A stretch of 64,000 bases of DNA from Paramoeba atlantica (taxonomy: Eukaryota > Protista > Discosea): contig CDRNVI010000087.1 of the NCBI GenBank assembly GCA_977017575.1, forward strand, positions 248,001 through 312,000, given 5' to 3'. The notes beneath the pieces are model-generated. The model was not told the origin of the DNA and did not search any database. It saw only the letters and a list, made by a program, of their open reading frames with translations. Both the position numbers and the translations under genes were made by a program. This document shows, piece after piece, positions 30,154 to 62,662 of this stretch. Within the stretch, counting starts at the first letter, position 1; the number at the start of each line of letters is the position of its first letter.

Positions 30154-30188
30154 CTTGTTGTTTTTTTTTTCTAAACTGTATCTCCAAC

Positions 30189-33100
30189 ATGTCCGACAAT
30201 CCCACTTCTCCGCGGAATGTTGACGATGCGCTGCCGGACCTCCCTCGAGCTTCCGGCGGCGTACAGACGCAAACCCTGCACTTCGTCCACAGCAGATCAC
30301 GGCCCGTTAAGATACGACGCCTCACTGATCTGCATTGGACGTATTTCCCGGACATTAAGACCGCGAGCCAATGGTCCATAGTCAGACAAAGAATTCCATC
30401 CCGACAAGGTGCGGAAGTAGCTATCACGAAACTGCTGAGTAAGTGTGCATCAGCACACGATCTCGTAGCTGAACACACCACCTTTGAGGAGCTCGTGGAG
30501 CATAACGCGTGCGACTATATAAAGGTTACGAGGAATGAACACCCCTACACCATCTCCCTGCACCCAAACTGGGTCTCGATGCACACCGACCCTGCCCTCA
30601 GCCTGCGAGACAAGTATTCCACCCCAAGCACGCTAAATAAGGCAGCCCTGAAGGCCATACAGGGAAGAGAAATATCGGGACTGAAGCACATAAAAATCGA
30701 GCTCATAAGAAACCAGGAATCACCAAGCACTGAAACCGCGGAATACGAGAAGCCGCGCAGGATAGAAGAATCCCCTCATAAAATCGCTCCCCCAAGAACG
30801 CCAAAGCCCCAGAAGGGTAAAACTGATCAACACAAGGGACCATGCAAGCACCGCTGCTTGAGCAAACTCTCCTGTGCTCACAAGTGCTGTAAAATCTATG
30901 GACCGCTGCCGAGTGAGGACGCTACATATTGCTCATCAGAAGGAGCACTGCCACCTGAGATCGTCCCAGAAGGAACCGCAAATAACACCAACCCAGGAGA
31001 TCCAAGTAAATATACGCCGGAAAGCACCTCTTCGGAACCTGCGACACATACAAAATGCAACACACATGCGTCGAACGGTCACCGCAAACCTACCGTACAT
31101 GATGAACCTTCCGCCCCGCATCCATGTCGTCATTCCTGCAAGAACAAAGCTACGTGCGGACATCTATGTTGTAAACGAGGCATTAAATCTTCGCATCTGG
31201 ACTTTCCAACTTCCGCGACTTCTACAAATGAAAATCTACAAACGAAGCTATGCAACGCAATATCACGGGAGGGCGCTCACACAACTTTAGAACGCGGGTT
31301 AAACCCGGCAACACAACCTCCACCTGATGTCCAAATGGTCCCACCTGCCGAGGGAACCCAAACAGAGGGGGCCGACGTCAACCAGAACTCCGTAACACCA
31401 AACCTCAACGACAACGATAGTGATTTCCTACGGAAAGCTGCTAAATTGGCTGGTTGGGCCATGCGTAACGTTATAAACTTCTACCGCCTTCCCAATACTA
31501 GCATCAACGGACCAACAAACGGGAACCAGCAAACTGTGCAAATCACGGATGCGACGTGCACTGACAACAAAGATAGCACTATGCACAACCCTGCGCCACT
31601 CCCTGACGCGACGCCTAGCAGTGCAGCGCATTACCCACAGAACACCGTACACGTGGAACCATGTCGTCACCGATGCTCGGCCAAGCTACGCTGTCTGCAT
31701 AAATGCTGTAAGATATATGGACCGCTTAGGTACAATGAGCCCCTCGTCCGACCTTCTCCTCTTCCTCCTCCTTCGCACACTACGGAACTTCGAGTTCCAT
31801 CATGGGATGAAACCAGCGAAAGGGAGCGCCTCCATCTGCTTGAACAACACAAAACCATAACAGGGGGAAAAATGTGCCTAAAGCTTAACGACGATCAATG
31901 GAAGGCGGTTGAAAACAAGGCATACGATACATGTCGAAGGCTGCAATACCCAACAGTAGACACCCCGGAAATCGCAGTGAAAAACGCAGAACTCCTGGGT
32001 GCCTCTCTGGCAGTGGCGGCATACGAAATTGCACAAGAGATTAACCCCACTAAAGGTTTCCTCACGCGATCGAAACGCGGACACGCCCGATTCAAGCACC
32101 GGCCACTTTCGTCTGAAAATGCAGCCCACGAAATGACGAAACACATACGCAACCAAAAGAAATCACTACGCTACACACACGGAACGGAACGCCAAGAGCT
32201 CCGTCGCTGCATTAAGGAAAGTGAGAAGCTAGAGAAAACATACACAGAAGAGGCCAAAGCACATAGGAAACAGCTAGAAAGACAATGGGCCCATAGCAGA
32301 TTCACGCGGAACCCGTGGACAGCAGCATCCGAGGCCTTGGACCGCCCCTCGACCTCCGCCACCGCCGAATATCCTGAATGCGATTTACCTACGATAGAAA
32401 AATATTTCACAGAAAGCACAGCACCTCCCGCCGAAGAGCATCGCCTGCCGCCGAACAACGTACTTGGTCCTCTACCCATCAACGAAATGGAATGGTCTCC
32501 ACTGACCGCGCAAGATGTCGCAGACGCGCTCAGCAGCAAAAGAAGCGCAAGCGCGCCAGGGCGTGATACGATTACAAACGCACTTCTAAAACAATGCAAA
32601 TACCTGTACCCCCGTATAGCGAACACGTTTAATGATCTTCTGCGCTACGGCGTCTGCCCGCCATGCTGGTCCTCCGCCGTAGTTAAACTCATTCACAAAG
32701 GAGGCGAAAAACACATCCCGAAAAACTGGAGACCTATCTCCCTGACTAGCGCTCTAGGCAAACTTTTCAATAGCATGATCGGACACCAAATTTTGACGCA
32801 TACCGTGTCCTCCGGCCTCCTAGATACAAGCGTTCAAAAAGGCTTTCTTCCGAAGATGAGTGGTACACTGGAACACACGCAAGCTCTCTCCGAAATACTA
32901 CAATATTACCGCCGAAACAAAAGGCAATATTGTCTCACGCAGTTTGATCTCAGCAATGCATTCGGCTCGGTCCCCCATAACATCATCTTCGAGGCACTGC
33001 GATGGGCAAACGTCTCGCCACAAATCGTGTCCTACGTTGAAAGCATGTATTCACATGCGGAAATGCGTATTAAGTGTGTCGAAGGTTTGTCACGTGCTAT

Positions 33101-34775
33101 ACCGATACACAGAGGCGTACTACAAGGTGATACCCTGTCGCCCATAATTTTCAACTTAGTGATGGAAACTGTACTACGATACCTCAAGCAATCGTGCCCC
33201 CGGTATGGCCTTGACTACCCAGATACTCCAAGGCATTTCCTGAAAGCCTACGTTGACGACCTGACGATACTGACTAGCAGCGATACCGACATGCAGCACG
33301 CGACCAACACACTCGAAACTGCACTGAGACGAATAGGACTCTCAATCAACGTAGACAAGAGCCGTACACAGTGCATGTCCATGCGTGAAGGCAGTGAGCA
33401 CCCGGGTTACATGACCAGGAAGCCGAGACTCAGTATCGAAGGCAAAGCGATACCACATATATGTGACCGTGGAAGCACTTTTCTTGGAATGACCATAGCA
33501 CCAGGAGCACAGCAAGCGAAAGAACTTTTCAAAAAGCTGGATGTCAGACTAAGAACATGGCTTCGGAATGTCGACGAGAGTGCACACAGTCTCCCCGAAA
33601 AACTTTGGATCTACAACAGAGCGATCGTATCCCGTCTGCGCTACGCCCTCACCGTTCACCCGTGTGTCACTTTCAACTTTGTATTGCGATTGCAGAAAAG
33701 AATTACACGTCACCTTAAGAAATGGATCAATGCAGCATCCACGACTTGCACCGAAATTCTTTATACTGAACGAGGGTGGAACCTTAAAAGTTTATCCAAG
33801 CTGTGGTCCGAATGCTCTATCCTAGCCTTAACACAGATGCACAAGTCGCGGGACCCATCGATACAGGCGGCACTACGAGCCCGAATCAAGCAAGAAGAAG
33901 AAAAACGATCCTCTGGTTATATTCGTCCAAGCGCTGACGCCATTCAACACCTTCATGACGCGCGGAAGGCGCAACAGATAGCCCGTGATAACCATGAATC
34001 TTACGTCATAAATCAGCTTCAGAGACGGGCACCGACAGCAGCAAAGTGGTGGAGCCTCCCCTCCGAGGCTGATCTCGCGAAAGAGTTCTCAGCGGCCCTG
34101 AACAACCTCAACAGTGAAAAACTTTCTCGCTTCGCAGCTTCAGTACTAACGCTTTCACCCCTACCATCCAGAACCAATCTTCGGCTTTGGGGTCTCCGGC
34201 GTGAGAGTGTAACATGTCCCATATGTAAACTCGAACCTCAAACAACAAGGCACGTGCTCTCGGGGTGCAAAGAGTCCCTTCAGCAAGGGAGATACACCCT
34301 CCGTCATGACATGTTACTTGAAGAGCTCGGAAAACACTTGCTGCGTTCGCCGTATACCAAGAGCGTACACCTAGATATCCCCGGATTTAGGAATGCCCCG
34401 GCATGGCTCGGCACCCGTGAGGACCTTCTTCGCCCCGACGGTTTGATTACACTTAAGGATGGAAGTGAGTTCATCATTGAGCTCACTGTGCCCTGGGAAG
34501 AGAACCAGTCTCAGGCGCACGAGGGCAAATCCCGTAAATATAATGCTCTCTTCCATGAACGACGCATTAATCACCCTAGGACGGCCCTTGTTGTATTCGA
34601 AGTGGGAGCCCGCGGCTCGTTACTCACATCTTGTCGAAACCTCAACCTCCTCTTTGACGAGGACACAAAGCTTGCGGAAAAATGTCGAGAAAGTCTAATG
34701 CAGACCGCCCTTCGAGGCAGTTTCATTATCTGGCAGAACCGCGAGTCTGCCGTTTGGACAGAAGGACGGGTATAA
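30189..34775 (+). CDS. RT-RLE polyprotein, 1528 aa, with three Cys/His zinc-finger repeats in the N-terminus
   Basis: NWRPISLTSALGKLF, QKGFLP, FDLSNAFGSVPH, GVLQGDTLSP, YVDD; CPIC..QTTRHVLSGC; GRYTLRHD; RPDG...IIELTVPWEE...K..KY. Confidence 0.95.
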   Translation: MSDNPTSPRNVDDALPDLPRASGGVQTQTLHFVHSRSRPVKIRRLTDLHWTYFPDIKTASQWSIVRQRIPSRQGAEVAITKLLSKCASAHDLVAEHTTFEELVEHNACDYIKVTRNEHPYTISLHPNWVSMHTDPALSLRDKYSTPSTLNKAALKAIQGREISGLKHIKIELIRNQESPSTETAEYEKPRRIEESPHKIAPPRTPKPQKGKTDQHKGPCKHRCLSKLSCAHKCCKIYGPLPSEDATYCSSEGALPPEIVPEGTANNTNPGDPSKYTPESTSSEPATHTKCNTHASNGHRKPTVHDEPSAPHPCRHSCKNKATCGHLCCKRGIKSSHLDFPTSATSTNENLQTKLCNAISREGAHTTLERGLNPATQPPPDVQMVPPAEGTQTEGADVNQNSVTPNLNDNDSDFLRKAAKLAGWAMRNVINFYRLPNTSINGPTNGNQQTVQITDATCTDNKDSTMHNPAPLPDATPSSAAHYPQNTVHVEPCRHRCSAKLRCLHKCCKIYGPLRYNEPLVRPSPLPPPSHTTELRVPSWDETSERERLHLLEQHKTITGGKMCLKLNDDQWKAVENKAYDTCRRLQYPTVDTPEIAVKNAELLGASLAVAAYEIAQEINPTKGFLTRSKRGHARFKHRPLSSENAAHEMTKHIRNQKKSLRYTHGTERQELRRCIKESEKLEKTYTEEAKAHRKQLERQWAHSRFTRNPWTAASEALDRPSTSATAEYPECDLPTIEKYFTESTAPPAEEHRLPPNNVLGPLPINEMEWSPLTAQDVADALSSKRSASAPGRDTITNALLKQCKYLYPRIANTFNDLLRYGVCPPCWSSAVVKLIHKGGEKHIPKNWRPISLTSALGKLFNSMIGHQILTHTVSSGLLDTSVQKGFLPKMSGTLEHTQALSEILQYYRRNKRQYCLTQFDLSNAFGSVPHNIIFEALRWANVSPQIVSYVESMYSHAEMRIKCVEGLSRAIPIHRGVLQGDTLSPIIFNLVMETVLRYLKQSCPRYGLDYPDTPRHFLKAYVDDLTILTSSDTDMQHATNTLETALRRIGLSINVDKSRTQCMSMREGSEHPGYMTRKPRLSIEGKAIPHICDRGSTFLGMTIAPGAQQAKELFKKLDVRLRTWLRNVDESAHSLPEKLWIYNRAIVSRLRYALTVHPCVTFNFVLRLQKRITRHLKKWINAASTTCTEILYTERGWNLKSLSKLWSECSILALTQMHKSRDPSIQAALRARIKQEEEKRSSGYIRPSADAIQHLHDARKAQQIARDNHESYVINQLQRRAPTAAKWWSLPSEADLAKEFSAALNNLNSEKLSRFAASVLTLSPLPSRTNLRLWGLRRESVTCPICKLEPQTTRHVLSGCKESLQQGRYTLRHDMLLEELGKHLLRSPYTKSVHLDIPGFRNAPAWLGTREDLLRPDGLITLKDGSEFIIELTVPWEENQSQAHEGKSRKYNALFHERRINHPRTALVVFEVGARGSLLTSCRNLNLLFDEDTKLAEKCRESLMQTALRGSFIIWQNRESAVWTEGRV

Positions 34776-34868
34776 CGTCTGTAAAAGATAGGTCTGGGCA
34801 GCGTCATATGCGCCCCCCAGGCCTATCCGCATATTCTCTGCCTTATAAAGGTATGATAAATTAAATAA

Positions 34869-41538: not shown

Positions 41539-41710
41539 TCCCAGTTGTCCACGTCTGTGCAAGCCCCAAACAGACAAACCCGGGACAGGGTTTATGTTTA
41601 ACAATATCTCTACACACATCTCTAAATTTTTATGTACAAAAACATGTAGAAAATGTTAGAAAATTGTTCAATAAAAAAAAGAGTTTTTTGGCCGGAAGTA
41701 TAAAGGGAGG

Positions 41711-42207
41711 TACTGATTCTTCGTCTGTATAAAATTTTGTTTTGTCATGCACTTGTAGTGCAGAGGTAAGCCCCAGTGTCTTTACCCGCATACGACGGGT
41801 GGATCACGCGAGGGTTCGTCTTCGCCTGTGGTAAGTGGGTGCAGAGAGATCGGTTGTCATGTGCGGGTGCAGAGAGCTGCGACAGAGCCGAGGTGCAGAG
41901 AGCCGGGAGGCTCGTGGGCGGAAGACACGTCTAGTGGTCCTCAAGGGAGGCCACCGTGACGCATTACCTCCTCGGAAAGGCGGGCACGGGAGAAAGAGAA
42001 GCCGAGAGAGGGAAGCACACTCACTCCAGGGGAGTGAGTCGGGAAGGGGTGAAGGGGTGGAAGCGCGTCCCCTGCTTCAACAATAGAGAGGGACAGTTTC
42101 GGCCTTAGTGCCGGCCGGCAACGGGCATAAAAATACAGTAACAGTATGCCCGTTGCCGGGGAAAGAAAGGATGAACTAAGGAAAAAGGACGAACAAGGTA
42201 CAGAAAC
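41711..42207 (-). mobile_element. SL-headed SINE-like element, copy A, 17-18 bp TSD
   Basis: Flanked by (C)GGAAGTATAAAGGGAGG at 41693..41710 and 42207..42224. SL relic 42192..42207. 3' hairpin 41748..41762. No ORF of note. Confidence 0.8.
42176..42191 (-). promoter_or_regulatory. Candidate trans-splice acceptor (polypyrimidine tract + AG)
   Basis: Minus strand CGTCCTTTTTCCTTAG|TTCATCC. Copy B has the SL joined directly to TTCATCC. The same site is at 62631..62646. Confidence 0.7.
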
Positions 42208-42279
42208 GGAAGTATAAAGGGAGGGGAGACAGTACGTTTGAAATTAGTATGCCTAGAACTTACGGTTTTGTTTTACACC

Positions 42280-42756
42280 ATGTTTTATACCTTTCTAGCA
42301 GCGGATGTTCCAGAGTCGCGTGTCATAGCTCGCGCAGCCAAAGTGAGCGCGACGAATCTTCCGTCAGAATACGATCTTGTGCGACTGGTGCGTAACATTG
42401 AGAATCCACATACCTCGTGGAGTACATCAACCCCGGCTTGCGAGTGGGATGGCGTGTCTTGTAACAAAGAGGCTGAGATAACGGGGATTAATTGGCCCTC
42501 AAGAAAACTAACCGGTGAGCTAAGCTTTAGTTATCTACCGAAAACACTGCATACTTTGTACGCTTATGTAAACAAGCTTTCCGGTGAATTGCAATTTGAT
42601 ACGTTTCCTGTTACATGTATGATGCGTACGTTAAGTCTTCGGGACAATGAGTTAAGTGGACCATTGGACTTAACGGCTCTTCCTCCAAAACTGAAGACGT
42701 TAATACTCTCTGGGAACCAATTTACGGGTGACGTTTGTTTGACGAAATTGCCGTCA
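42280..42756 (+). pseudogene. LRR gene, 5' part (split by retroelement)
   Basis: Nearly identical to 36584 and 62735; ends at ...LTKLPS. Confidence 0.9.
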
Positions 42757-45700
42757 TGTTATGATTATCATGCAGTAAACTGCAGAGATTAAAACAGAAG
42801 AAGATCGGGTGTATCCCTTTAGTGCGCCCAAAACGCACTTCTTCTTCTGACATGCCCACCTCATTGGAAGCTTGGCATATACCAGTTGGGGTTCTCCCGT
42901 TGTTGGTATATGTGGAAACTTCCTAGTAGTGCTCGCTGCACTAGTTTTTCCCTACACTTGGAGGCTTCAGCCTTAGTTCCAAAGAGGGAGTTTATCGCAC
43001 GTGCGGAGGAGTTCAGCTTTCCTCTCGCACCAACTTCAAAAACCAGGAGAAAGGTCGACGGATTCGCTAGCCTGCGCTGCGTGTAAAGATGTGTGTACTT
43101 ACGAACCTTCCGTTCGTGGGCGTATTCCAAGTTCTCTTCCCATGGGGATGTAAGTTCAATTATGTACTCGGACCCGTTGTGCAGCCGCACCCATCCATCT
43201 GGTCTCAGTTCAGTTCCGTGCGAGAGCCAGGGAGGAGAGTTGCGGTACAGGTCCACATCAAAGTGGTACGAGGATGTGGTGGGAGAGTTGGCAACAGCGT
43301 CTGCAAGGGCAAGTAGTATAAGATCATGGCGGTATGTATACCGTCCTTGCTCAAGGGACACTTTGCAGCCTGTTAAGATGTGGCGCGGGGTCTGGGTCGC
43401 TTCGCCACAAATTGGACATGTGACGTTCGTGTGTGACGATATGCCCCACCGGCGGAGAGAGGAACGCGTAGGAAGTGGAGTTTGAGTGAGCACGGATGCC
43501 GCGAAGCGAGAGAGGGAGGAGCTTTTGATATTACATAGGACAGAAGCGAAGTCTTTCGCTAGGTCGCTTTCTGTAGCCATTTGAAACCATTCGCAGGCTA
43601 TGGTGCTGCGGCGTTGTACTGACTCGATCAAGTGCCTTTCATGCTCATCGTTAATTGTTCTTCGGAGGTTATCGGGGTCACCCCGCATATCATAGAACCT
43701 CGCTGCGGGCCTCACATGTCCTGATGAGCGTCTACGTTGCTCGTTGGCTATCCTGTGTCGTAATGCGTACTGTACCGCTGGGTCACGAGATTTGGACATT
43801 TGCGAGATGGCTGTGGCCGTACACTGCAGCCAAAGCTTAGAGATGCTCATCATCCGCCAGCCGCGCTCAGAGTAGAAGAGTTCACTTGTGGCCGTTTTCG
43901 CAACGTTAAGTCATTTCCTGATTTGGTTTGTGGCCAACTTTTGGAGACGTAGGATATAGTTGAAAGTGATCCCTGTGTTCACAGTCAGGACGTACCGGAG
44001 ACGGGAAATTATTGCGTTATTGTAGATCCACATTTTCGCTGCTTGATCAAATGCGCTTTCCGTAATGTTTCCGAGCCACTTCCGCAACTTACATTGCAGG
44101 GTTTTGAATAGAACTTTTCCTTGTTGTGCCCCAGGAGCTAGCGTCATTCCGAGAAAGAGACTTCCCTTGTCACAGATATGTGGAATTACCTGCCCATCCG
44201 TGACTATGCGAGGGCGATGTGTCTTGTAACCTCCGTTGAGGACTGCCATGTGTTGCACTCGGCACTTCCCGACGTTCAGCCGGAGCCCCATAGTGGTGAG
44301 AACCCGGTGCAGAACGTTGGTCGCCCGCTGTAATTCGTCAGGGGTGCCCGCGACAAGGGTTAGGTCATCAGCAAACGCTTTTATGAAGGTTTCTCGCGTG
44401 TCCCATACAATACCATATTTTGGCAGGCTAGATCGGAGGTACCGAAGGACCACTTCCATTGCGATGAGAAAGAGAACAGGAGATAAGGTATCGCCTTGGA
44501 GAAAGCCACGTGTTATAGAGATATCTCCGGTCAATCCCTCTGCACACTTCACTTGCATGGAAGCTCCCGTGTACAGGGCTCGAACTGGTACAGGGCACCA
44601 ACTCTAACGTTGGTGGGAAGGCGAGCCCATTCCAGGGCAGAGAAGAGCACCTAGTGTGGGAGTGAACCAAAGGCATTCTTGAGGTCGTACTGTCCAAGGC
44701 AGTATTGGCGTTTGTGTTGCCGTTGGTGGTCAAGAAGTTCACAAAGCGCTTGGGTATGTTCGATACAGCCATTCACACCAGGCAGGAATCCCTTCTGGAT
44801 TGTAGTATCTATTACTCCCGATCCTGTGACATGTTCCTGAATCCGGTGGCTGACAATGCTGTGGAAGAGTTTCCCGAGACAGCTCGTAAGGCTTATGGGC
44901 CGCCAGTTGGAAACGTTCTGCGTAGGGCCACTTTTATGCACAAGAAGGGTAACCGCTTTCTTCCAGTTGTCGGGACAGACCCCAAATTTGAAGAGGTCGT
45001 TAAACGATTGGGGTAAGAAAGGGTGTAGCGCGGGGCAGCGCTTTAGCAGCGCATTGCTAACGGTGTCAGAGCCTGGTGCCGCTGTATGGCGCTTCGATGA
45101 TACAGCGGCTGCGATCGTGGCGCTATCTATTGCTTCCCATGTCATGTCTCTATCCGCCTGGGGGCCCAGAAGCTCTGTTGGAGGAAGTCCACATTCTTGA
45201 GTTGTTTCCATAGAGCCCCTGAAATAGGACTCTACTTCGGCGGGGGCGATGTCTGGATGCTTCCCATTACGTTGCTGTGCTTCTTTTTCGTGGTTATCAA
45301 TACATTCACTACCTGCCGTCCAGGGATTCCTTTGAAATCTTGTGTGGGCCCAGCGCTGAGCCATCTCCAGTCGCTGCGCTTCTCCTTCTGCCATGTAGAC
45401 CTTCTGAAGTTTTACAGCCTCTTTCAGTTGACCCTTGACGTGGTTCCGCTCGGCCCGTCCGTGGGTATATCGCAATGTTGCTTTCAGTTGTCGAACGTGA
45501 GTTTCAAGCTGCTTGGCCGAGCGCTCCGCTGCCAGGGGGCGTGTTCTGCGACGGTTGTGACGCGCGTTTGTTCTAATACGGAATCCCCCGGTTGGATCTG
45601 CCTCGCTGGCCACCTCGTATGCCGACACCGCGAGACATGCCGTGAGTAGTTCTGCTTGTGCGGTAGCCTCGTCGGCACTCTCTGCGGGACTCAGAAATTT

Positions 45701-47693
45701 GGTACATCTTTCCAGTGCCTTTTCCTCCGTGCGCTGCCACTGTGCAGAGGAAAGATGTATCATGATGCGGCCTCCTTCTATGGTGCGTAGTGTGGATAGA
45801 AGAGTTCCGGGTGTATCCTGCACGTTCTCCAATCGGGACGTTGCGGCCCTCGATCGGTTCGCATTAGCCATCAGAGAGCGGGAAGATCGAAGCAGTGGCG
45901 GTTCAGGCTGGTTCTCAGGGTTCCTTATCAATTGGGGTGAGTTGGGAGTTGGTTGATCGTTCTCATCCCCCGACGAGATCGAGTTTCTCTGACCGGTGGA
46001 TCGCGTCTGGCTGCTTGAGGTCGTCGATGTGGTTGTCGGCGTGGTGGTTGGTGTCTCTTCCTTGGATTGGTTGAGGCGAGAGTTTTGACTTCTGGAAATA
46101 CTGATGTTTTGCACGGATCCGTCGGGGTTGATCTGTCTCTCTGCTGGGGGTCGTGACCCTAGGAATAGACTTCGAAGACTCCAGATGACGATTCAGCGGA
46201 TGAGGGCCGCGCGGAAACTAGTACTCCTTCTTTGCAGCACTTGTGTAGGCATCGGGCTTTGTCCTGGCATTTATGCAGACACGGTCGTCTATTGACTTGT
46301 ACCTCATTGCTAAGGGCAGGTGTGGAGTTGTTGGGAATCGGCAGCGGATCGGGAAGTGCTGTGACATGAGGGTTACTGTCTTCTAGTGGGGCATTTGCTG
46401 CATGGGTCTCGGTTGTCACGTTGTCAGAGAGCTGCGCTCGCTCATTTTATGAGGTCCACGGTATGAGACTCCTCAGGGACCAACGGGCTGCAGAGGGGCG
46501 CGTTTTCGAGGCTCTATCGCTGTCGTAGTCGTGCGCACGCCTGGTTTCACGGCTCTGGTACGCACGGGGTTCATGTAGTGCTGATTGGACGGTTCGGGTG
46601 CTCCGCTCGTCAAGGGAGGGTGTGAGAGGAGTTGCCGTTGCTGGGTGAGGATCCCGTTCTGGGTGAGGACGAGGGGAGATGGGGACTCCCACCTTGCAGC
46701 ATCGATGTTTGCAATTCGCTTTATCTCGGCATATGTGCTTGCAGGGCCGATGCGTCACCGAGGTGGGAGGGCTGCTTGGCGTGGAGGGAAGTGGTGCTGG
46801 AGTGAGATTTTCTGCATGCAGCTCGCTAGAGGAGTCAGTTGTGGTTGGTACCTGCATAGCTGCGCTTACGGGTTCAGGTAAATGAGGATTTCCGCTTTCC
46901 GGGTCGGTGATTTTGCAGCAGGGATGTTTGCATCTCATTTTATTGAAGCAACGGCGTGCGCAAGGTTCGGTGCGTGCTGATGTAGGGGCCGGTTCTGCGG
47001 GGGTGTTCCGTGTGGGGAGGATTCGGTAGGGTTCGTCAAATCGGATTTTCGGCTTGGTCCACCCGATATCTGCATCTTGTTGCGGCTCAGGGGAGACATG
47101 TGATATTGCGAAGCGGGCCAGTGAGGGTATTACACGTCCGTTGAGTCGTTTTTGTATGGCCCGTCCTAGGGATCCCGCTGAGGAATAATCCTGGTCGAGC
47201 TTCATGTCTTTGTCATTATACGCTGAGGCCCAGCTTGTGTGTCGGTAGGTCGAATATGGCGCCGAAGTTTCGCGGAAGAGGAAGAAATCGCATGCTTTGT
47301 GGTCCATAACGTCGTTCAAAGTGCATCTTTGGACCACGATTCCGTCGGAGCGCTTCGCTCCTGATGAGAGAGTTCGTGCGAGGGAAAGCTCCGCTGTGAT
47401 TTCCGCTTGGAAATGGTCCTTCTCAGTTAGGAATAAGGCTGCCGCGTGCGTGTCGGGGAAGTAAAGCCAGTGTGGAGACTCCGAGTTTCTGAGACGTAGG
47501 GATACTGCCCGATTCTGGGTGAGGCGGAAGCTTTTCTCTCGAGGTGGGGGCGCGCTGGCAGATCCTCGAGGGAGGTCGCCTGGCGCTAGGGGGGCGGGGT
47601 AGGAGGGTGAAGTGTCATGCCCCAATGGGGGAAAGTAACAGTTAGTACGAAATTGAAAATAATTCAACAAGGTACAGAAACTGTATCTTTATA
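42757..47693 (-). mobile_element. NeSL/HERO-like RLE retrotransposon copy 3, full length but frameshifted, SL-headed
   Basis: ORF pieces 46447..47670, 46159..46419, 44651..46114, 43911..44558 and 42861..43853 (FADD, GRYTYRHD, RPDG..IELTSPWEE). SL relic 47665..47693; 3' hairpin 42771..42784. The empty site at 63201..63220 shows no TSD beyond one A. Confidence 0.92.
47665..47693 (-). other. Spliced-leader relic (29 nt, longest in window)
   Basis: Minus strand TATAAAGATACAGTTTCTGTACCTTGTTG. Confidence 0.85.
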
Positions 47694-47957
47694 GAGCTCA
47701 TAAATCTTTGTCTTGGTAGGAACAAGCTATCCGGAGAACTTTGCCTTAGTGAACTACCAAAAGTCCTTATGCTCCGACTTGAAAACAATAATTTTTACGG
47801 AAATATTGACCTAACAGGAGTTCCACCTTCATTGGGAGACCTTCATTTGTCCAACAATGTGAATCTATTTGGCGAAATAGAAGAGCGTCTTCTTTCCGAA
47901 AAACTTCGCAAAGGCCTGAAGATTGAAAACACGAACATTACGCTTTTGACCACCTAG
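47694..47957 (+). pseudogene. LRR gene, 3' part
   Basis: ELINLCLGRNKLSGEL... resumes exactly where 42756 stopped. Confidence 0.9.
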
Positions 47958-48180
47958 TTTCTGTTTTAAAATCATGAAGTAGACAGCTCTACAGAGAAGG
48001 ACGTTATAGAGAGCGGTTGCTTCAGTAAAAAAAAGTTCCTAAACGTGTTATTTTTTTCGGGTTGAGCGTTATAATTTGGAACGCTGAACCTGTCGTTTAT
48101 AATAGAGGACATTCTGGCTTAATATTGCTACGCGTGTCACGAGTCAAATATTGTGTCATTTTTAGACCACCTACTACTGT

Positions 48181-49026
48181 ATGTTAACACTTAGTATTCA
48201 TCTGGCTGATACGCAGCCATTGCGGCTTAAACAACAGAGAAAGGAATCCAACACTGCATTGCCGTTAGGAGGAGATAACACATTAGAAGATAAAATACCT
48301 GTTGTCCGCACGGGTAAGGTACGAGGATCGGAATTACCACAAGAATATGAACTGGCACGACTTATTGCGAATATTGAGAATCCACGTTCCTCTTGGAATG
48401 TTTCAACCGCGGCGTGTGAGTGGAAAGGTGTGACTTGTGATGAACACTCACGCGTCACAAATATTGAATGGAAGACCCCTGCGCTAGATTCTGATCTGGG
48501 AACTATGGAAGCACTTTTAGAGGGAACGCTGCAATGGGAATATTTGCCCCCCACTTTGCTTTATTGCATTGTTATGAATAATCAACTGTCAGGAACGGTA
48601 CCGCTTGATTCACTGCAGCCGAAGCTGATATACTTTGTCGTAAGCTATAATGTGTTTAGCGGTGAATTGAATTTGAAACATTTGCCACAGACCTTAGAAA
48701 GGCTTTATCTCGACCATAACGAGTTTGTCGGACCTGTGGATTTGACTCATTGGCCACCGAATTTAGTTTTGGTTAGCGTCTCGAATAACCACCTTTCAGG
48801 GAGGATTGATCTGTCTTGTTTGCCTGACTCTTTGATACAGGTACTTTTGGCGGACAACATGTTTAAAGACTTCGTGACATTCGACAAAATTCCTTCAGGC
48901 CTAAAATACTTAGGCCTCAAGAACAACGGAAAGCTTTGTGGTGAGATTGATCTGTGTTTTTTTAAGAGACGAGGCCAAACGATAAGCTTTTCAGGGACTA
49001 AGATTAAAAGGAAGCAGTTTGATTGA
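48181..49026 (+). CDS. LRR protein, 281 aa
   Basis: TAACEWKGVTCD cap plus ~7 LRRs, intact. Confidence 0.88.
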   Translation: MLTLSIHLADTQPLRLKQQRKESNTALPLGGDNTLEDKIPVVRTGKVRGSELPQEYELARLIANIENPRSSWNVSTAACEWKGVTCDEHSRVTNIEWKTPALDSDLGTMEALLEGTLQWEYLPPTLLYCIVMNNQLSGTVPLDSLQPKLIYFVVSYNVFSGELNLKHLPQTLERLYLDHNEFVGPVDLTHWPPNLVLVSVSNNHLSGRIDLSCLPDSLIQVLLADNMFKDFVTFDKIPSGLKYLGLKNNGKLCGEIDLCFFKRRGQTISFSGTKIKRKQFD

Positions 49027-49066
49027 CAGGAAAAGAGATTGATTTATACTGTGCCCCCCCCACTTA

Positions 49067-50604
49067 CAGGGGTGCGAATCTAAAGGTGGGGGGGTCTAAA
49101 ATTCGTAAAAGTTGTCCAATTTTGGAAAATAATAGCGCATTGGATAGCTCTCACAGAGTTGTATGTTTTAGGATAGGTAGCATCCGGGGTTTGGGGGGTA
49201 CCCCCCTTTCATGTAAGGGTCAAAAACACATATTGCAATACTTTAGTGATGTCAATAATTTCTGTAATTTGGATTGCAAAAGACAATTAGTAACCACAGT
49301 GCCCCCCGTTCCCACTAATAACAATTTCACAACGCTTCCTGAAACTCTTCAACGTTTTCTGAACCGTTGCAGAGTGGGCCTGTTTCAATTTAAGGAAAGA
49401 CCCCTCAATGGCGGCTTCCAGTTGCTGTCGATTTCGGGGTCGAAGAAGATTTTTGTCTGTGTCCATCACAGACCACAAATTTTCGATCTGATTCAGGTCT
49501 GGAGATTTTGCAGGCCAGGGGAGAACGGAAATTCCTGTATCACGGAACGTGGCACGCGCCTTGTTGTGGGCCGGGCAGTTGTCCATGGCAATCGTGGCCG
49601 CTGGATGTCGCTTTAAATATTGAAGAAAGCCCCGTGGCTTTTTCATAGCCTGATCAAAAATTTCACCCGTAACGGTGAGTTTCTGGCCTTCTGAATTTTG
49701 AGGAGGGAAAATGTGGAGATGGAAGCCGTGTTTGAGGCTCACACCCATCCAAACCATAATCCCATTTCCGCCGTACCATGATTCTAGCTCGCCTCGTTGT
49801 TCCTTATGGGGGTCCGTCCTCCGACAAAGGTAAGTTCGCCCGGAACACCCACGACCGCAAGTAAACTTCTTTTCGTCACAATAAACAAAATGAAGGAGAT
49901 GAGCGTCGCTCTTCTCGAGCATCGCCTTACAAAATTGCAACCGTTTCTCCTTGTGTTCGAGTGTGAGTGATGGTCGTCGCCGAAGAGTGCGGAGCACAAC
50001 GCCTTGCTTCTTCAATGTGTCGACTAGGGTCCGTCGATTGCAGGTGAATCCTTGGCTACGGATCTCTCGCAGAAGATCGCTCCAGCTCTCTACGCCGTAA
50101 ACAAGGTCGCAATACCCCTCGTCGACAAGCTTGAGAGCCACATCCAGGAACGCAGGGGTAACCACCGTCGAGACACGCTCTCGGGATGCCTTCAACACGT
50201 CACCCGTAAGGGTAAAACGTTCAACCCAACGTTTTACAGTGTTCTCATGAACACCAAAGTGCTGCGCCGTAGCGGAGTACGATCCTGTGCGCTCGTATTC
50301 CGCCACCAAAAGCATGCGGTGACTCTCTTTGACGGGGGCGGGGGAAGAATACGATCTATCGCTCAGTACTCCACGGGAAGTCTTCGAGCGAGCGCGCTTT
50401 TGGGGCATTTTCTAGTAAAAAATGTAATTCCTGCGAGGGAAAAAAGCGAAATGTTGTATCAAAAAATATGTACGTTAAAATCACAGGATTTTAATGCGCC
50501 TAAAACATACAACTCTGTGAGAGCTATCCAATGCGCTATTATTTTCCAAAATTGGACAACTTTTACGAATTTTAGACCCCCCCACCTTTAGACCCGCACC
50601 CCTG
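49067..50604 (-). mobile_element. Tc1/IS630-like element, 106-bp TIRs, TA TSD
   Basis: TIRs 49067..49172 and 50499..50604 (two mismatches); TA at 49065-66 and 50605-06. Confidence 0.93.
49287..50408 (-). CDS. Tc1/IS630-like transposase, 373 aa, DD32E
   Basis: HTH (SYSATAQHFGVHENTVKRW), VYCDEKKF, MDNCPAH, WPAKSPDLNQIENLW; 32 residues between the second D and the E; intact frame. Confidence 0.9.
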   Translation of the reverse strand: MPQKRARSKTSRGVLSDRSYSSPAPVKESHRMLLVAEYERTGSYSATAQHFGVHENTVKRWVERFTLTGDVLKASRERVSTVVTPAFLDVALKLVDEGYCDLVYGVESWSDLLREIRSQGFTCNRRTLVDTLKKQGVVLRTLRRRPSLTLEHKEKRLQFCKAMLEKSDAHLLHFVYCDEKKFTCGRGCSGRTYLCRRTDPHKEQRGELESWYGGNGIMVWMGVSLKHGFHLHIFPPQNSEGQKLTVTGEIFDQAMKKPRGFLQYLKRHPAATIAMDNCPAHNKARATFRDTGISVLPWPAKSPDLNQIENLWSVMDTDKNLLRPRNRQQLEAAIEGSFLKLKQAHSATVQKTLKSFRKRCEIVISGNGGHCGY

Positions 50605-50741
50605 TATAGTGCCGCGGGGTACCCCCCCCCACTTATAGTGCCGTTTAGAAGAAAACAAATTGTCCGCAAAAAAATTGATCAATTCTTTTTTTTACAAAAA
50701 AGGTAGAGTAAATGTAGCGTAAATTTCTAATATTTTCTTTT

Positions 50742-52905
50742 ATGGAAATCATTGAAACTTTATTGATAGTTCCCTTTATCCTTTCAATGACTGTCGATTC
50801 GAACGAGAACGAGCCGCTAGACAAAGCGCACACTCGTGGATCGGCGATTTCAGGTCCTTTGGGACGCTGGTTTACGGTGATTCCGCCAGCGCCGAGAATT
50901 GGTCCCCAAGTGGCCAGCCGTCGTCCCCCCAACACACTTGATTCTCTTCCGATGAGCACACCTAGAACCTCTAGAGTGTGTTTGACTATGCAAGAGAAGT
51001 TGAATGTGTGTCTGAGCGAATTGGACACAAAAAAGCTGAGCGAAAAGTATCGGATCAGTTTAAGAACTGTCCGAAGTATTAAAAGCAACGGTGCCTCTTT
51101 TTATCAATCACGTATTAATCGTGGTCTCAAGGGAAGAAAGCGCCAGAGAGGCTTTAACAAAGAGCGGAAGGCAATTTTAAGGAAAGTGCACCTTAAATTG
51201 CTCCAAGAAATCAATGGTAAACATGCTGTAACGAAGGCATTTGTCTTTTCCGTTATGGAAACATACGGAATACAGCTTCAAGGCTTTGCCGATGAGACGA
51301 AGGAACGCATATACAAGCGCTTCAAGCGTCTTTTCGGGTGGACAAACCGAAGATTTGGACGTGTCCACTACGTGAGTCCTTCCGACGTGGGCTCGCGAAT
51401 ACGAGCTTGGGCACGGCACAAAATCAAGTCCGTTCATACGCGTATGTGATATTTGGGGATAAAACGTCTCTTCCGGTTGATGGTGAAAATACGGGAGTAA
51501 CATTGGCTCCCATAGGGCTTCGTAACGTGCAAGTCGTAACCACCAACGACAAGGAAAGTATAACTGTTTTTCTTTCCGGTGTTTACGATGTTCACAACAG
51601 AAAAGCTCTTCCCCTTCCTCCTACGGTACTGTTCAAGTCCAATGCAGAAGATGAAAAGTCCCGCATACTGTGAGACGCTCAACGTCATGTTGCTCGGACG
51701 CTCGACAACGCTTTGAAGGTGTACGTAACTTCGATTGGTTGGATGAACCGTCAAGTATTTGAAGAGATCATGCACGATCAAGCTTCCTTACTTGGAGGTT
51801 CGCAACCTGCGACAGCTCTTGTAGTGGATGAGTACACAGCCCATCGGGTTCATAGAATCCCCACTAATTGTGACTTCCACAGGATTCCTGGGGGCTGTAC
51901 TTATCTCATTCAAGTACACGATCTTCGGATTATTGTATTCTTCAAAAGCGAATACGAATTAGCCTTACGGCTCTGGCGCCTAAAAGCTGGTGATCACATA
52001 AAAGTGAATCGCCATGTAGTATTAGGGCTGATTAAGGTTGCCCATGAACTTACTTGGGCAAAATATGGCACCCAGATACAAAAAATATGCCAAACCCATC
52101 TCCTTGAGCCCATGACCAAATATCCGTTGAATTTGAACTCTAAGGATGAAACATCTGACTCAAGGCGAAAGCTGAAAAAGAGAGCCAAGGCATCTGTTCG
52201 AAACGAAAGCGGGGCGAAACCTAATAAGATACCAGTATCACCAGAAACCGGAAGACGATTAATGGCCTCTGCGTTGGCTTCACGTAAGAAACTTTTCGAA
52301 AAAAATGATCAATCAACAAAATTAAATAAGATCGATGTAGATGCTCTGCCATCAACTGAATAAAGGGGATCCTTGGACAACTCCTACAAAGGGGATCGAT
52401 GGAATGCTATCCGCCGCCGGGGCTCTCTTATCCCATGTGGACTTCTCGATATTTTATGCAACCGAGTAGTCGAAAAATACAATTCGACACAAACGGGTGT
52501 AAAGGTCGCACTGTGGAATGTGTGGCAAACACAGGCACTTCTTGGGTTTGGGACTGTCCCTGAACTCGATCCTGTGACGGAGTTGTACTATCTTCCTCAC
52601 GCTTGTATTACGAAGTTCACTTCGTACTTGTTCGGGTCTCTTCCAACACCCTTCTAGTCTTTGACAGTTTAAAACAACACGCTCCTCGTGCAGCAATGGA
52701 CAACTTAAATCGCTTTGTGGAAACCTTAAAATTATCGCACGAACGATATCATGGACTACAGGTCACATATGTTGATTGCGTGCAACAAGCTCCTGGAGAC
52801 AATGACTGTGCATTGCACGTCGTAAATAATTTATATATGAACCTCTTCTCCAGTGATACTCCAGTCATTAGTCAGAAAACTGCAAAGGAATCTTGGTATC
52901 CATAG
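50742..52905 (+). pseudogene. pogo-like transposase (HTH + DDE_1, DD30D) followed in frame by an Ulp1-like protease
   Basis: Pieces 50742..51449, 51338..51673 (TGA) 51713..52363 (TAA) 52373..52657, 52603..52905. Motifs FGDKTSL, GWMN, VVDEYTAH, IPGGCT..IQVHD; HFVLV, VFDSL, QQAPGDNDCALHV. Confidence 0.75.
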
Positions 52906-53300
52906 GATTGATATGTTATATTAAAGCCCCAACTGTTCGGCTCGAGGGCATGACCGTTCAGCAGAAAAAAAGACCCAAGAAGCGACTCTAAAGTGGGCGG
53001 TCGTTAATAAAAAAAGAAAAACAACAAAAAAAGAATAAAAAAGAAAAACAACAAAAAAAGAATAAAAAAGAAAAACAAAAAAATAAAAAAAATAAAAAAA
53101 CAAGTTTGATACAGGATAAATGGGGAGGGCACCTCACCTATATCACAAGACGGACACGTATACATAAAGTGTTGTATGTATGTAATCTTTGAAATTATTC
53201 GTTTGACAGTCGTAAAAAGATTCTCTTTTTATGTTTGGCGATGGATTCCCCGATCGCATAGTTTACATTGATAATGTGGTTATGATAAGGCCTTAATATA

Positions 53301-54232
53301 AACCCCCGCTCACGAATAAGTGACCCCCCCCTTATTTTTAGCACAGGGGGGCGTCGGTGGGTTATCATATCACTTTTTCGTTCAAAATTTCGAGATCTGT
53401 ACGTTCCCGCTGTTTTTAGCTCATTTTAAAATTTTAAAATTTAGTCAAAAAACATAATTGGTTTTTCAACTTTTTTCCAAAAATGACCAAATCACCATAT
53501 CGGCTCCCAGAAGGGGGGCTTACGGATAGTGGTAAGGTTCTTTTGAAGATGAGACAGGCAGAAGGTGTTCCGATAAAACAATTATCCCGTGATTTTAACG
53601 TCTCTAGAAGGATAATCAAAAAATATCTGAACGAAAAAAAATCTAGCGGGGAATACACTTTGAGTACTGTGACCATCTATTACAAGTGAGACATCTACAA
53701 TGACACATCTATTACAAGTGAGACGTACATAGAAACATCAAAACATGTAGATTTCCCCCCTAATAGTGCATTTCAACAGGATGGGGCAACGGCACATACT
53801 GCCCGTGCCTCCAAAGAGTATATTGAGAATTGAATGAGTGATGTTCTAAGAAACTGGCCCCCCAACTCGTCCGACCTTTCCCCCATAGAAAACGTCTGGT
53901 CTATGGTCCAAGAGGCGGTAGACGAACAAACCCCATCGGACAAACCTTCACTTATCCGATGTGTACGTAAAGCATGGTCTTCTTTAACTCAAAAAGTGAT
54001 CGACAAAACAGTATTAAGTTTTGATTCTCGACTTAAGGGGTGTATAAGATTGAAGGGCGAAAAAGTGACAAAATGGTAAATCTTCTCTAAATTGTGCGTA
54101 TTCGTTTCTTTTTGTCTCATTTCTGCACGCGCAAAGTCCTTGTGTTGAGATCTGCAAAATGCAACAAAAAACAGCTCAAACTGACATTTGTACGAAAAAA
54201 AAGAGGGGGGTCACTTTTCGTGAGCGGGGGTT
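53301..54232 (+). mobile_element. Internally deleted Tc1-like element (DD35E remnant), TA TSD
   Basis: TIR AACCCCCGCTCACGAA(T)AAGTGACCCCCC; HTH 53483..53689; FQQDGATAH...WPPNSSDLSPIENVW with an in-frame TGA; TA at 53299-300 and 54233-34. Confidence 0.8.
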
Positions 54233-55522
54233 TAATAAGGCATTTCAAATATATTTCGTTGATTAATTTATGTAGAAAAGCAATGGATGTTATTTTGAAT
54301 GCAAGCATCGGTTTGGGCTCACAGTTTGTAATTTTTTCTTTCGAATCTCTAGAATTGAGTCGAGTACTTCATGGAATTCTTTCACCGTGCTCTGCCACAC
54401 ATTAACCAACCAGACCTCTTGTCTTGCGCATTATTGTCCTCTCTTTTCCCACTAACACCCCATCACCCGATTACCCATACACAGCAGTGGAGTAGAAACT
54501 CCATTTACAGCGCTTAGGCACTCAAAAACACATGATAGAAAGAATTGCGCCGCGAAGCGGCGCGCTTTTTTTTTGAGGGGGAAAAATTTTGATCCTCGAC
54601 CTGAAACATACTACCCTCCCCCCACTTATAGTGCCGTTTGGTCGAAAACCGCGGCACTATAAGTGGGGGGGGCACAGTAACTTAAGAAAGCACGTGCAGT
54701 GATGACCAAAGTAATACCCCCTCACGATCGGCTCTTTTATATCTGTTTCTGCTATTTTTTGTTGCATTCGAGATATCTCGTTCTCGTAGCGCGTTGGTGA
54801 TATTTTGATTTTTTTAGCCTTTCCAGTTAAAAGAGGACCCAAGAGGGACCGTAATTGCGCTTGTATTTCTTGGCGCAGTGCCGCACACCATCCGCCAATT
54901 CTATTTCGTTTAGCGATGAGGGCGTGTTGTTTTCACAGATCAGTAACAGTAGAAGGTTGTTGCGAGGAGGGTTGTCTGTGGAAAAAGGGATAATGTTGTG
55001 AGGCCCTCCTTGCAACAATCCCGTGGCCTCGAAGTCACACTTCACGCACAGTGCTTCCCTTCAGCGAGATGGGATCCTATGAGGCTAAGGATGATTTTTC
55101 TTCAACAAGCGAACCCTCGACACCCCTGGCCTTAGGTCACTTACCATACATGTAGATGAATGTGTATTGTTTTCTACGGCATTATTGACGAATTCATTGA
55201 AGAATTCGTACGGCGTGAAATTTTTTTGGAGAACACGGAGAATCTTGGCTTGATGAATCGACAGATTTGCACCCTGTCGATCTAAGACGTTAACCCACAT
55301 TTTCGGTCCCGTCCATTATTGACCAAATGATCGTGCTGGCCATCGGAGCCAATGCATAACCCTTTTCTTGGGCAGCGGCACGCGCCTCATTATAATACTT
55401 TTCATTCCTCATTTCGTTCGAAGAGTACGAGCTGTTACGGGTGGGGGTCCCTAGTAGGACCTCTTACTGTCTTGTATGGCAGAGACGTCCACCCGTTTTT
55501 CGAAATCCCCCGTCTTTGCGCT

Positions 55523-55568
55523 GGGACAATCTTTCTGCAAGTGTCCAATTTGATGACAAATAAAACAC
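55523..55568 (-). other. CCHC zinc-knuckle coding relic in a decayed region
   Basis: Minus strand translates CFICHQIGHLQKDCP (C-x2-C-x4-H-x4-C); no long ORF around it. Confidence 0.45.
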
Positions 55569-56658
55569 ACGCTTTTTTCTTCCGAAGCTACCTGATCCCG
55601 TTTTCGCTTTGATTTCCTGTACGTTCTTCAGCCTCTATTTTCGAATGGATCGGTTCTGCATCAATCAAAGTTACATAAATCAAAGTTCGCGAATTAATTC
55701 TCGTAATTTCAGCGGATCTCCATCATGTGCCATCCACAATTTACATGTTAGGGGATCCATTGCAAGTTGTACGCATCTCCCCGACGTTCCACCTCGTTAT
55801 CAACTTCGATATCCTGAGCCCCTGGCTTTTCGTAGTACACACTTGAGCTGGAGAAGGCCTCCGCCTCAGCTGATGCCGAGCCCGCACCGAACCCGCAGCC
55901 CCTCAACTGCTTTCACAAAGTCCGCAGCAGGAAACAGCTTGTGAAATTTCTTAATCTTTCCTGGTGAGGTATAGAAACGTACGCTCAAAACACCACGGGA
56001 ATCCCTTGAGCGAACTCGCTTATGACGCTTAAATGGGGGGAAAACTTGGCATATTTTCGCATAAACGTATAAAAATCAATCAATAACAGTTCATTTTAAT
56101 ATAACTTCTTAATGTGCTTTTTCACCTCGAACCCAACGCAACTTTACGCGCTCTCACTGAACGATTCACCAACTTCGACGGCGTCAGTAGATGTGCTGTA
56201 GTTTGAGTTACTGACTTCTTCGCTCCCGTCCAGTTCCCCGTACCCGTAGTATTGAGCAACGCAATCCATCATGTTCACAAATCTCGTCTGCAAAGAGTGC
56301 TCTCGGTTGCTGTGCACCTCTCCAAACTAAACATACTGGGGTGCAACGTTCCTCCGCACTTGTGAAGTGTGGGGGAATGAAACGACGCTTGACTAGTTTC
56401 CAACGTGTGCGCCCCATGTCGTGACCTTTTACTTCCATCACAGTAGCGAACCACCATCCAACTTTACCGGTCTGTTTCCCCAGATGATATTTCCTTTTGC
56501 CAATAAAGGTCTAGTCTGCTTGCACTTTTGAAAAATTGTACGTACTCGTTTCTTCTTGGCAAAGAACCGCATTACCCGAATGGCTTAATATCGTTTCAGC
56601 TGTCTTGCGCCGTATTCCATGATTCCTTTGCGATTTGACCCATACACAAATTGTTACC

Positions 56659-56782
56659 TTGAATTTGAAACATTTGCCACAGACCTTAGAAAGTCTTTAT
56701 CTCGACCATAACGAGTTTGTCGGACCTGTGGATTTGACTCATTGGCCACTGAATTTAGTTTTGGTTAGCGTCTCGAATAACC
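56659..56782 (+). pseudogene. Orphan 124-bp LRR fragment
   Basis: Matches 48667..48790 with two substitutions; flanks are unrelated. Confidence 0.85.
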
Positions 56783-57000
56783 TACATCCCCTCGCAATGG
56801 TATCGAACATTTAATGATTAAATTTTAATCGATTCGAATGTCCTTTACCTCGAAAGTACAAACCGACATGTGGCTTTTTCCGGGCACATCCTTCATGTAC
56901 AAAATTCTATGGCCAGAGCAAGCGGGAAGACGCAAAAGGCCGTGGCTCCCCACAGTGTACTGCGTTCTCCCCTTGTGTGATCTCCCCGAGACTTCGCCAG

Positions 57001-57556
57001 TTTGTTTTGTCATGCACTTGTAGTGCAGAGATAAGCCCCACAGTGTCTTTACCCGCATACGACGGGTGGATCACGCGAGGATTTGCCCTCGCTGGAGGAG
57101 AATGGGTGCAGAAAGCTGGCGTCCCAGGTGCAGAGAGCTCGGTTGCCATGTGCGGGTGCAGAGAGCTGTAATCCCCATATTACAGTTTCGGAGGCAATCC
57201 GGGTGCAGAAAGCTGCGACAGAGCCGAGGTGCGGAGAGCTGGGTGACCGCCAAGTGCGGAGAGCCTAAACGCGGGCAGCGAGGGACAGGTCTAGTGGTCC
57301 TCAAGGGAGGCCACCGTGACGCCTAGCTCTCTCGGGGAGGCAAGGATTGAGAAGAGAGCCGAGAGAGGGAAGCACACTCACTCCAGGGGAGTGAGTCGGG
57401 AAGGGGTGAAGGGATGAAGGAGCGTCCCCTGCTTCAGCGAGAAAGAGAGACAGTTCTGGCCTTAGCGCCGGCCGGCAACGGGTATGTAAATACAGTAAGA
57501 GTATGTCCGTTGCTGGGGAAAGAAAGGATGAACAACAAGGTACAGAAACTGTATCT
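57001..57556 (-). mobile_element. SL-headed SINE-like element, copy B (divergent)
   Basis: 24-nt SL relic 57533..57556 joined to TTCATCC; body homologous to copies A and C; 3' hairpin 57013..57027; no TSD found. Confidence 0.8.
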
Positions 57557-62165: not shown

Positions 62166-62662
62166 TACTGATTCTTCGTCTGTATAAAATTTTGTTTTGC
62201 CATGCACTTGTAGTGCAGAGATAAGCCCCAGTGTCTTTACCCGCATACAACGGGTGGATCACGCGAGGGTTCGTCTTCGCCTGTGGTAAGTGGGTGCAGA
62301 GAGATCGGTTGTCATGTGCGGGTGCAGAGAGCTGCGACAGAGCGGAGGTGCAGTGAGCCGGGAGGCTCGTGGGCGGAAGACACGTCTAGTGGTCCTCAAG
62401 GGAGGCCACCGTGACGCATTACCTCCTCGGAAAGGCAGTCACGGGAGAAAGAGAAGCCGAGAGAGGGAAGCACACTCACTCCAGGGGAGTGAGTCGGGAA
62501 GGGGTGAAGGGGTGGTAGCGCGTCCCCTGCTTCAACAATAGAGAGGGACAGTTTCGGCCTTAGTGCCGGCCGGCAACGGGCATAAAAATACAGTAAGAGT
62601 ATGCCCGTTGCCGGGGAAAGAAAGGATGAACTAAGGAAAAAGTACGAACAAGGTACAGAAAC
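62166..62662 (-). mobile_element. SL-headed SINE-like element, copy C (duplicate of A)
   Basis: TSD at 62148..62165 and 62662..62679; SL relic 62647..62662. Confidence 0.8.

Follow-up and report, generated by a model that had tools for sequence, protein, structure and literature searches.

A spliced-leader-headed retroposon family with an internal pyrimidine-AG, and one copy that probably records splicing at it

The 64,000-nucleotide (nt) stretch analysed here, referred to below as the window, comprises positions 248,001 to 312,000 of contig CDRNVI010000087.1 (assembly GCA_977017575.1, filed under Paramoeba atlantica). It contains three related copies (A, B and C) of a retroposon resembling a short interspersed element (SINE), each headed by a piece of spliced leader (SL). 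In A and C the leader is followed by 15 nt ending in CCTTAG, called here the linker or 15-mer, and then by the body of the element, which begins TTCATCC; in B the order is SL|TTCATCC. The question which this locus raises is whether the leader of copy B was placed there by trans-splicing at the AG which A and C still carry. The three copies are:

41735..42207, minus strand: SINE copy A; SL tail 42191-42207, linker 42176-42190, body from 42175 to about 41735
56999..57556, minus strand: SINE copy B; 24-nt SL head 57533-57556 placed directly on the body (57532 downward), without linker
62190..62662, minus strand: SINE copy C, a duplicate of A; SL tail 62646-62662, linker 62631-62645, body from 62630

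On the minus strand copy A reads GTTTCTGTACCTTGTTC-GTCCTTTTTCCTTAG and then TTCATCC, with its AG at 42177/42176; the linker is GTCCTTTTTCCTTAG, and the body ends in ...GCATGACAAAACAAA, as it does in other copies. Copy C reads as copy A but with GTAC (linker GTACTTTTTCCTTAG; AG at 62632/62631). Copy B reads AGATACAGTTTCTGTACCTTGTTG followed at once by TTCATCC, the last SL base being 57533. A three-way alignment reduces the difference between B and A/C to a single clean 15-nt indel, and so bears out the first-pass annotation of this locus, which had placed the SL of B where A and C have their pyrimidine-AG stretch. That annotation also described the leader relic of A and C as carrying one extra or changed base. 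The changed base is there, in that 16 nt of SL in copy A are followed by C in place of the last SL G; the extra base is not, since 11 other copies read TTG|GTAC, and the anomaly is a G-to-C substitution. Six occurrences of the 16-mer SL tail were counted in the window, where 0.06 would be expected.

The junction in copy B is bounded by the exact end of the SL exon on one side and by the first base after CTTTTTCCTT-AG on the other, and both borders are as trans-splicing of a 15-mer-bearing transcript would predict. Approximately five deletions of at least 4 nt were counted in 18 copies over ~165 columns of the 5' alignment, from which we roughly estimate the chance of one such deletion matching both borders at about 1e-3 to 1e-2. 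Microhomology at the borders is limited to 1 nt (G), and the nearby direct repeat CCTT would have given a different product. We consider it probable, rather than assured, that copy B records trans-splicing at the pyrimidine-AG of the 15-mer followed by retroposition of the spliced RNA.

This presupposes a genuine leader. A Joint Genome Institute (JGI) metagenome contig (Ga0316204_10168667; our locus L008) carries the same exon, made up of AACTTTAACG and the 28 nt seen in the window, followed by GTATGAGAAGC and a terminal stem-loop, and adjoining a 5S rRNA gene (98 bits). It represents a complete SL RNA-5S rRNA repeat unit in the usual euglenozoan arrangement, and in it the exon end precedes GTATGAG. 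Because its leader matches the window heads over at least 34 nt, all of them identical, the organism or a close relative is present in that environmental sample. In the RNA-like sequencing run X3 there are over 30 different contigs whose sequences separate just beyond the exon end. The window leader is thus a real spliced leader, and we read the host as a euglenozoan with a kinetoplastid-type leader. The leader of Diplonema papillatum resembles it without being identical (...CTGTACTTTATTG vs ...CTGTACCTTGTTG here), so that the species must be a different one. An Rfam search of loci L007 and L008 at the E-value threshold returned only 5S rRNA and chance miRNA matches, and a literature search for the leader string returned nothing relevant.

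Further copies were obtained by searching protein collections with open reading frames (ORFs) that cross the element, the frame being open through SL and 15-mer, and by retrieving the encoding contigs. This gave 11 loci (~187 kb, from one European Nucleotide Archive assembly), which with the window bring the sample to ~253 kb. These loci and the window have in common a leucine-rich repeat (LRR) family at 86-88% and a repeat at 97%, and are taken as one organism. Sixteen independent insertions possess a readable 5' junction, their flanks and SL truncations being different. Fifteen of these consist of SL head, (G)TAC, a T-run, CCT(T)AG and body, and carry CTTTTTCCTT-AG, that is, a 10-nt pyrimidine run and AG such as is expected of a trans-splice acceptor; B alone is without the 15-mer. 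The AG-bearing arrangement is the standard 5' end of the family and not a chance relic, and the earlier view that the form seen in A and C is a special relic has to be given up.

The family falls into two subfamilies with bodies only ~53% identical, and the 15-mer form is found in both. Their SL heads are 28/28 identical while the neighbouring sequence has diverged, which argues that the head is either renewed or strongly constrained. Most copies have an SL ending in TTG and then GTAC; three have one G fewer (L003, L004:14847, L012), and L005a, L007, L010 and L011 have 1-2-nt insertions at the SL/linker border. In a maximum likelihood tree of the bodies, copy B, the most diverged member of subfamily 1, is nested within that subfamily in a 10-row clade (support 93/97) and has the longest end branch (0.12). 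Because B lies among linker-bearing copies, the 15-mer is ancestral and its absence from B derived. A sub-lineage (L005:10457-10745, L007:8-299, L010:10386, L011:10505) has the linker GTACA-TTTCC(C)TTTAG, a body starting TTCATCT and a distinct 3' half.

The first-pass annotation had proposed collecting genomic copies in order to look for tandem SL relics and other AG-bounded junctions. With the 11 loci added, no SINE copy sampled has tandem leaders (two or more per copy), nor is there a second AG-bounded junction; that of B is the only one. At L012:8380-8430 (minus strand, subfamily 2) there is a partial duplication within the SL head (at 8399), which reads GATACAGTTTCTC, AA, AGACACAGTTCCTGTACC and is ambiguous as a tandem relic.

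The linker forms part of a conserved fold. In a young copy the 5'-terminal 164 nt yield a structure far better than those of shuffled sequences (z = -4.4), with four helices. In H1 the SL segment ACAGUUUC pairs with GAAACUGU (GRAACUGU) in one of the best-conserved blocks of the body; in H2 SL GUACC pairs with GGUAC at the junction, the same stem-loop being possible for GUACC and GGUAU in the real SL RNA; in H3 CCUUAGU, with the AG inside it, pairs with ACUAAGG; and H4 is a 14-bp hairpin. In copy A the head has its pairing partners in this part of the body:

42093..42109, minus strand: ACTAAGG at 42103-42109, pairing with linker CCTTAGT, and GAAACTGT at 42093-42100, pairing with SL ACAGTTTC

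Across 18 copies 95.8% of cells are paired, as against 29-39% when the partners are slid. For H3 the figure is 98%, and three of its seven pairs have changed on both sides between the subfamilies (CCUUAGU:ACUAAGG vs UCCUAGC:GCUAGGA), these double-sided changes belonging to one lineage split and hence to few independent events. Even so, they show H3 to be maintained, and the 15-mer is a structurally conserved part of the SINE RNA. Copy B has lost both H2 and H3.

That SL-headed RNAs are reverse-transcribed in this genome is best seen from other elements of the window, two of which are long interspersed elements (LINEs) encoding reverse transcriptase (RT):

30118..34868, plus strand: LINE1, RT-encoding, with a 1528-aa ORF; SL head of 28 nt (30126-30153), probably ~36 nt from 30118; same 3' terminal motif
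42757..47692, minus strand: LINE2, RT-encoding, which entered the locus A LRR gene later than the duplication described below; SL 47665-47692
12026..12044, minus strand: 19-nt SL tail heading unrelated sequence with a 420-aa ORF
28-nt SL heads: window 47665-47692 and 30126-30153; L005:17463, L007:8, L009:10563, L010:10386 and L011:10505

Pfam assigns RVT_1 and zf-RVT to the RT ORFs of the window. Judged against the empty paralogous site 63211 in locus C, the LINE2 insert begins with exactly 28 nt of SL (SL nt 11-38) and went in without target duplication and without poly(A). Since it starts in this way relative to an empty site, SL-headed RNAs do integrate, and such RNAs are clearly reverse-transcribed in this genome. 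The SL end ...CCTTGTTG is found in all 16 SINE insertions, in both LINEs and in the 12044 copy, so that each carries the exact 3' end of the exon expected of an SL-tagged retrocopy. Six SINE copies and LINE2 have heads of exactly 28 nt that start ATAAAG; elsewhere the length of the head varies between 7 and ~36 nt. The probable longer head of LINE1 reads CTTAATCG, against CTTTAACG in the real leader. Beyond the exon end of LINE1 (window 30118-30175, plus strand) the last seven SL bases, CTTGTTG, occur a second time ahead of a T10 run, possibly as a short remnant left by a previous head; the case is ambiguous. Among the fetched loci there was no other copy of LINE1, LINE2 or the 12044 unit that retained an unspliced acceptor.

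The element itself is short (500-580 nt), holds only short ORFs without a consistent frame, and is dispersed (the 16 insertions above); we regard it, from these features, as a non-coding retroposon of SINE-like character. Contig depth over the element in run X2 is ~30x that of its flanks. Its last 30 nt, a TCTCTGC-hairpin-ATGAYAA module, are invariant in five SINE copies, LINE1 and LINE2, as in SINEs which share a 3' end with a LINE, and the hairpin stem shows a compensatory change (GCAC/GTGC in the SINE vs GCAG/CTGC in LINE2). This fits mobilisation of the SINE by the window LINEs through recognition of its 3' end. The window gave no Rfam match at gathering score, so that no polymerase III small RNA was recognised in the head, and the 3' sense ORF of B had no matches in a protein search. 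Derivation of the SINE body from the SL RNA intron was rejected: local alignment scored 13, whereas shuffles averaged 16.1 and 1870 of 2000 reached 13 or more, and only GTA is common to the two.

Copies A and C represent one insertion, later copied by a 1.2-kb segmental duplication:

41539..42756, strand not applicable: segmental duplicate of 61994-63211, 97% identity, covering the SINE with its flanking sequence and the beginning of an LRR gene (plus strand)

The first-pass annotation had explained the three copies by alternative or successive acceptors captured as separate insertions. Its reading of the B junction, at the exon end and directly after the AG, holds, as does the descent of B from linker-bearing ancestors; A and C, however, are a single event, the duplicated segment spanning the flanks and the LRR gene.

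An 18-mer borders the SINE on both sides:

42207..42224, minus strand: 18-mer CCTCCCTTTATACTTCCG, repeated at 41693-41710; in locus C at 62662-62679 and 62148-62165

The pair was tried as an 18-nt target-site duplication around A/C and rejected, because it occurs with a 26-nt spacer and without the SINE in L001 (4678/4722) and L004 (762/806). It consists of pre-existing direct repeats of another repeat family, into which the A/C SINE inserted; the 25 bases first read as a 3' extension of A/C are the 26-nt-spacer sequence of that family. This family, consisting of two 18-nt direct repeats C(C/T)CCCTTTATACTTCCG and the spacer, is seen also at L004:3925/4006 and adjoins an ORF of the DDE_Tnp_4 type (41153-41617). 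In run X3 contigs join SL-like sequence near its start (42225).

Taken together, these observations would be accommodated by the following scheme. The standard template would be an RNA consisting of the host SL, then GTAC-TTTTT-CCTTAG (15 nt), the body beginning TTCATCC, and the terminal stem-loop module common to it and the RT-encoding elements. New copies would arise by reverse transcription, the 3' end of the SL remaining intact and a variable part of its 5' end being lost. A/C would be an ordinary copy, later duplicated with its surroundings. Copy B would be a rare by-product, in which a 15-mer-bearing transcript was trans-spliced at the pyrimidine-AG, the leader thereby being joined to TTCATCC, and the resulting RNA retroposed. 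The transcript so spliced may have been that of a genomic copy already headed by an SL, or that of a two-acceptor master not seen in the sample. As for the leader of the standard form, the SL-headed daughters could not regenerate it by splicing before GTAC, and it may go back either to unseen masters with an AG at that place or to masters located in, or descended from, SL RNA genes.

Several points weigh against this scheme. There is but one linker-less copy in the sample (1/16 insertions). L002:7918 and L002:10006, which have ~70 nt of 5' flank in common and derive from an old DNA duplication (L002:7850-8150, L002:9930-10480), differ by a 4-nt deletion which is not AG-bounded and has the same left border: L002:7918, truncated at 231 nt, has lost GTAC directly after the SL. 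Indels at the DNA level thus do occur there. The AG, moreover, is part of a conserved helix and may look like an acceptor partly by accident. A master copy with non-SL upstream sequence and an AG before GTAC was not seen in the ~253 kb. The sequencing data comprise Logan contigs of four runs, in which the letters between joined parts are not known. The SL|TTCATCC joint was not seen in the contigs of run X3, B not being among the aligned loci, and the joint 42175|47665 was found in run X2 only, where the intervening letters are not known and may be hidden. The joints 42181|47665, 42176|47664, 42108|47665 and 42225|47665 were considered as exact junction variants and abandoned, since the letters in between are not known and the joints can be accounted for by contigs that bear the linker, or belong to subfamily 2, and have their diverged part left unaligned.

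How else could B have arisen? It might be an ordinary linker-bearing insertion that later suffered a 15-nt deletion in its DNA, the agreement of its borders with SL end and AG being coincidental. Small indels do cluster at this border (the 4 nt of L002:7918, the G missing from three copies, the 1-2-nt insertions in four), B is old enough (branch 0.12) to have decayed, and it is the single copy of its type; the exactness of both borders with a single base of microhomology, the different product that CCTT would yield and the small chance estimated above nevertheless make such a deletion quite unlikely. A different proposal is that an unseen master has one acceptor at AG|GTAC... and another 15 nt downstream at CCTTAG|TTCATCC, that splicing nearly always takes the first, and that SL-headed copies are never re-spliced. 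The identical and always intact 3' end of the SL in both subfamilies would follow directly, as would the 15:1 ratio, and kinetoplastids commonly trans-splice at neighbouring AGs. The ~253 kb sampled showed no master of this kind, however, and the conservation of the 15-mer in the fold is left unexplained unless the mature RNA needs it; we hold this proposal to be a tentative possibility.

Doubtful, in our judgement, is the suggestion that the standard head and its GTA were never trans-spliced but copied from an SL RNA gene (exon and first intron bases), the masters lying in or deriving from SL genes and being transcribed from the SL promoter like SLACS; the 15-mer would then be sequence of the element, and B would need a separate event. 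It has in its favour that G-T-A always follows the exon, as in the real intron GTATGAG, that GGUAC pairs with SL GUACC just as GGUAU does in the real SL RNA, and that daughters have no AG before GTAC (TTG instead) and so cannot regenerate their RNA by trans-splicing there. In addition, the modal 28-nt head (six SINE copies and LINE2) starts at the CZAR/SLACS insertion point, 28 nt from the exon end (PMC5814959). Beyond GTA, on the other hand, SINE and SL RNA intron are dissimilar (score below the shuffle mean), and no copy in the sampled loci lies inside an SL gene or before TGAGAAGC. LINE1, LINE2 and the 12044 copy, moreover, have the SL on unrelated sequence without GTA, so that SL addition at the exact exon end does occur in this genome. 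A bolder version makes the standard SINE RNA a mimic of the SL RNA, with masters in or from SL RNA genes and driven by the SL promoter, an RNA which might itself donate a leader. The G|GUA 5' splice site in stem-loop I like that of the real SL RNA, the conserved anti-SL octamer in the body and the coincidence of the modal head start with the cleavage point of SL-gene retrotransposons are suggestive of it; we think it unlikely, but were it true one would be dealing with a new class of SINE built on the head of an SL RNA gene. Trans-splicing at the AG of the 15-mer, followed by retroposition, remains the reading of copy B which we prefer.

Two further features of the window deserve mention. A tandem array at 12379-27550 (period 2922 bp, ~5 units, 97-99% identity) has in each unit a 244-aa LRR ORF with an LRRNT_2-like start. 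Amid the LRR genes and retroelements lies a 384-aa ORF (39492-40646, minus strand) with HTH_38 and integrase core domains, similar to IS30-type transposases.

Genomic copies of a leader are established for the retrogenes ('recycled' cDNAs) of dinoflagellates, in which relict SLs mark RNAs that were reverse-transcribed, and in which a retroposed copy may undergo another round of transcription and splicing that the sequence records (Slamovits & Keeling 2008, reviewed in PMC6050394). As there, a leader copy in the present genome marks DNA reverse-transcribed from mature RNA. Unlike the dinoflagellate case, the leader is borne by a mobile element that is non-coding and has LINE partners, not by a host retrogene, no SINE copy has two tandem leaders, and the setting is a euglenozoan with a kinetoplastid-type leader; a new leader would be joined 15 nt downstream of the old one, at the pyrimidine-AG, whereas in dinoflagellates it is joined at an AG within the relict. 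In Diplonema papillatum hundreds of partial SL exons lie outside the SL RNA genes and were ascribed by the authors to retrotransposon activity on mRNAs (supplement of PMC10161547). That report gives no element family, junction analysis or acceptor, and its leader differs from that of the window.

The retrotransposons CRE, SLACS and CZAR are site-specific for trypanosomatid SL RNA genes (PMC12278014, PMC5814959), and CZAR/SLACS insert in trypanosome SL genes at nt 11/12, leaving 28 nt of exon downstream (PMC5814959). The present family resembles them in being a retroelement tied to the SL, with a modal 28-nt head equal to the exon length downstream of their insertion point. It differs in that its copies lie scattered, within an LRR gene and other repeats, instead of being fixed in the SL gene, have no flanking SL intron, and carry the SL piece at their own 5' end, fused at the 3' end of the exon. 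With SINEs headed by tRNA, 7SL, 5S or snRNA it has in common that it is short, non-coding and multi-copy and possesses a 3' module found also in RT-encoding elements; unlike in those, the head is the 3' part of an SL exon, no Rfam family is matched, and the body is unlike the SL RNA intron. A limited literature collection contained, for Euglenozoa, no SINE/LINE system that is headed by an SL and combines an internal acceptor with a 5' domain pairing with the leader.

Genomic leader copies constitute a built-in tag of reverse-transcribed RNA, exploited so far mainly in dinoflagellates. In this family the tag has become a constant and structurally integrated 5' part of a mobile element, one copy of which appears to record a second splicing event. 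The pairing of leader and body, together with the modal head length of 28 nt, suggests that retrotransposons specific for SL genes and dispersed elements headed by an SL are connected. If the internal AG is indeed used, the family would allow cycles of splicing and retroposition to be counted, and would make it possible to test by what route non-autonomous elements acquire a cap at their 5' end where transcription is polycistronic.

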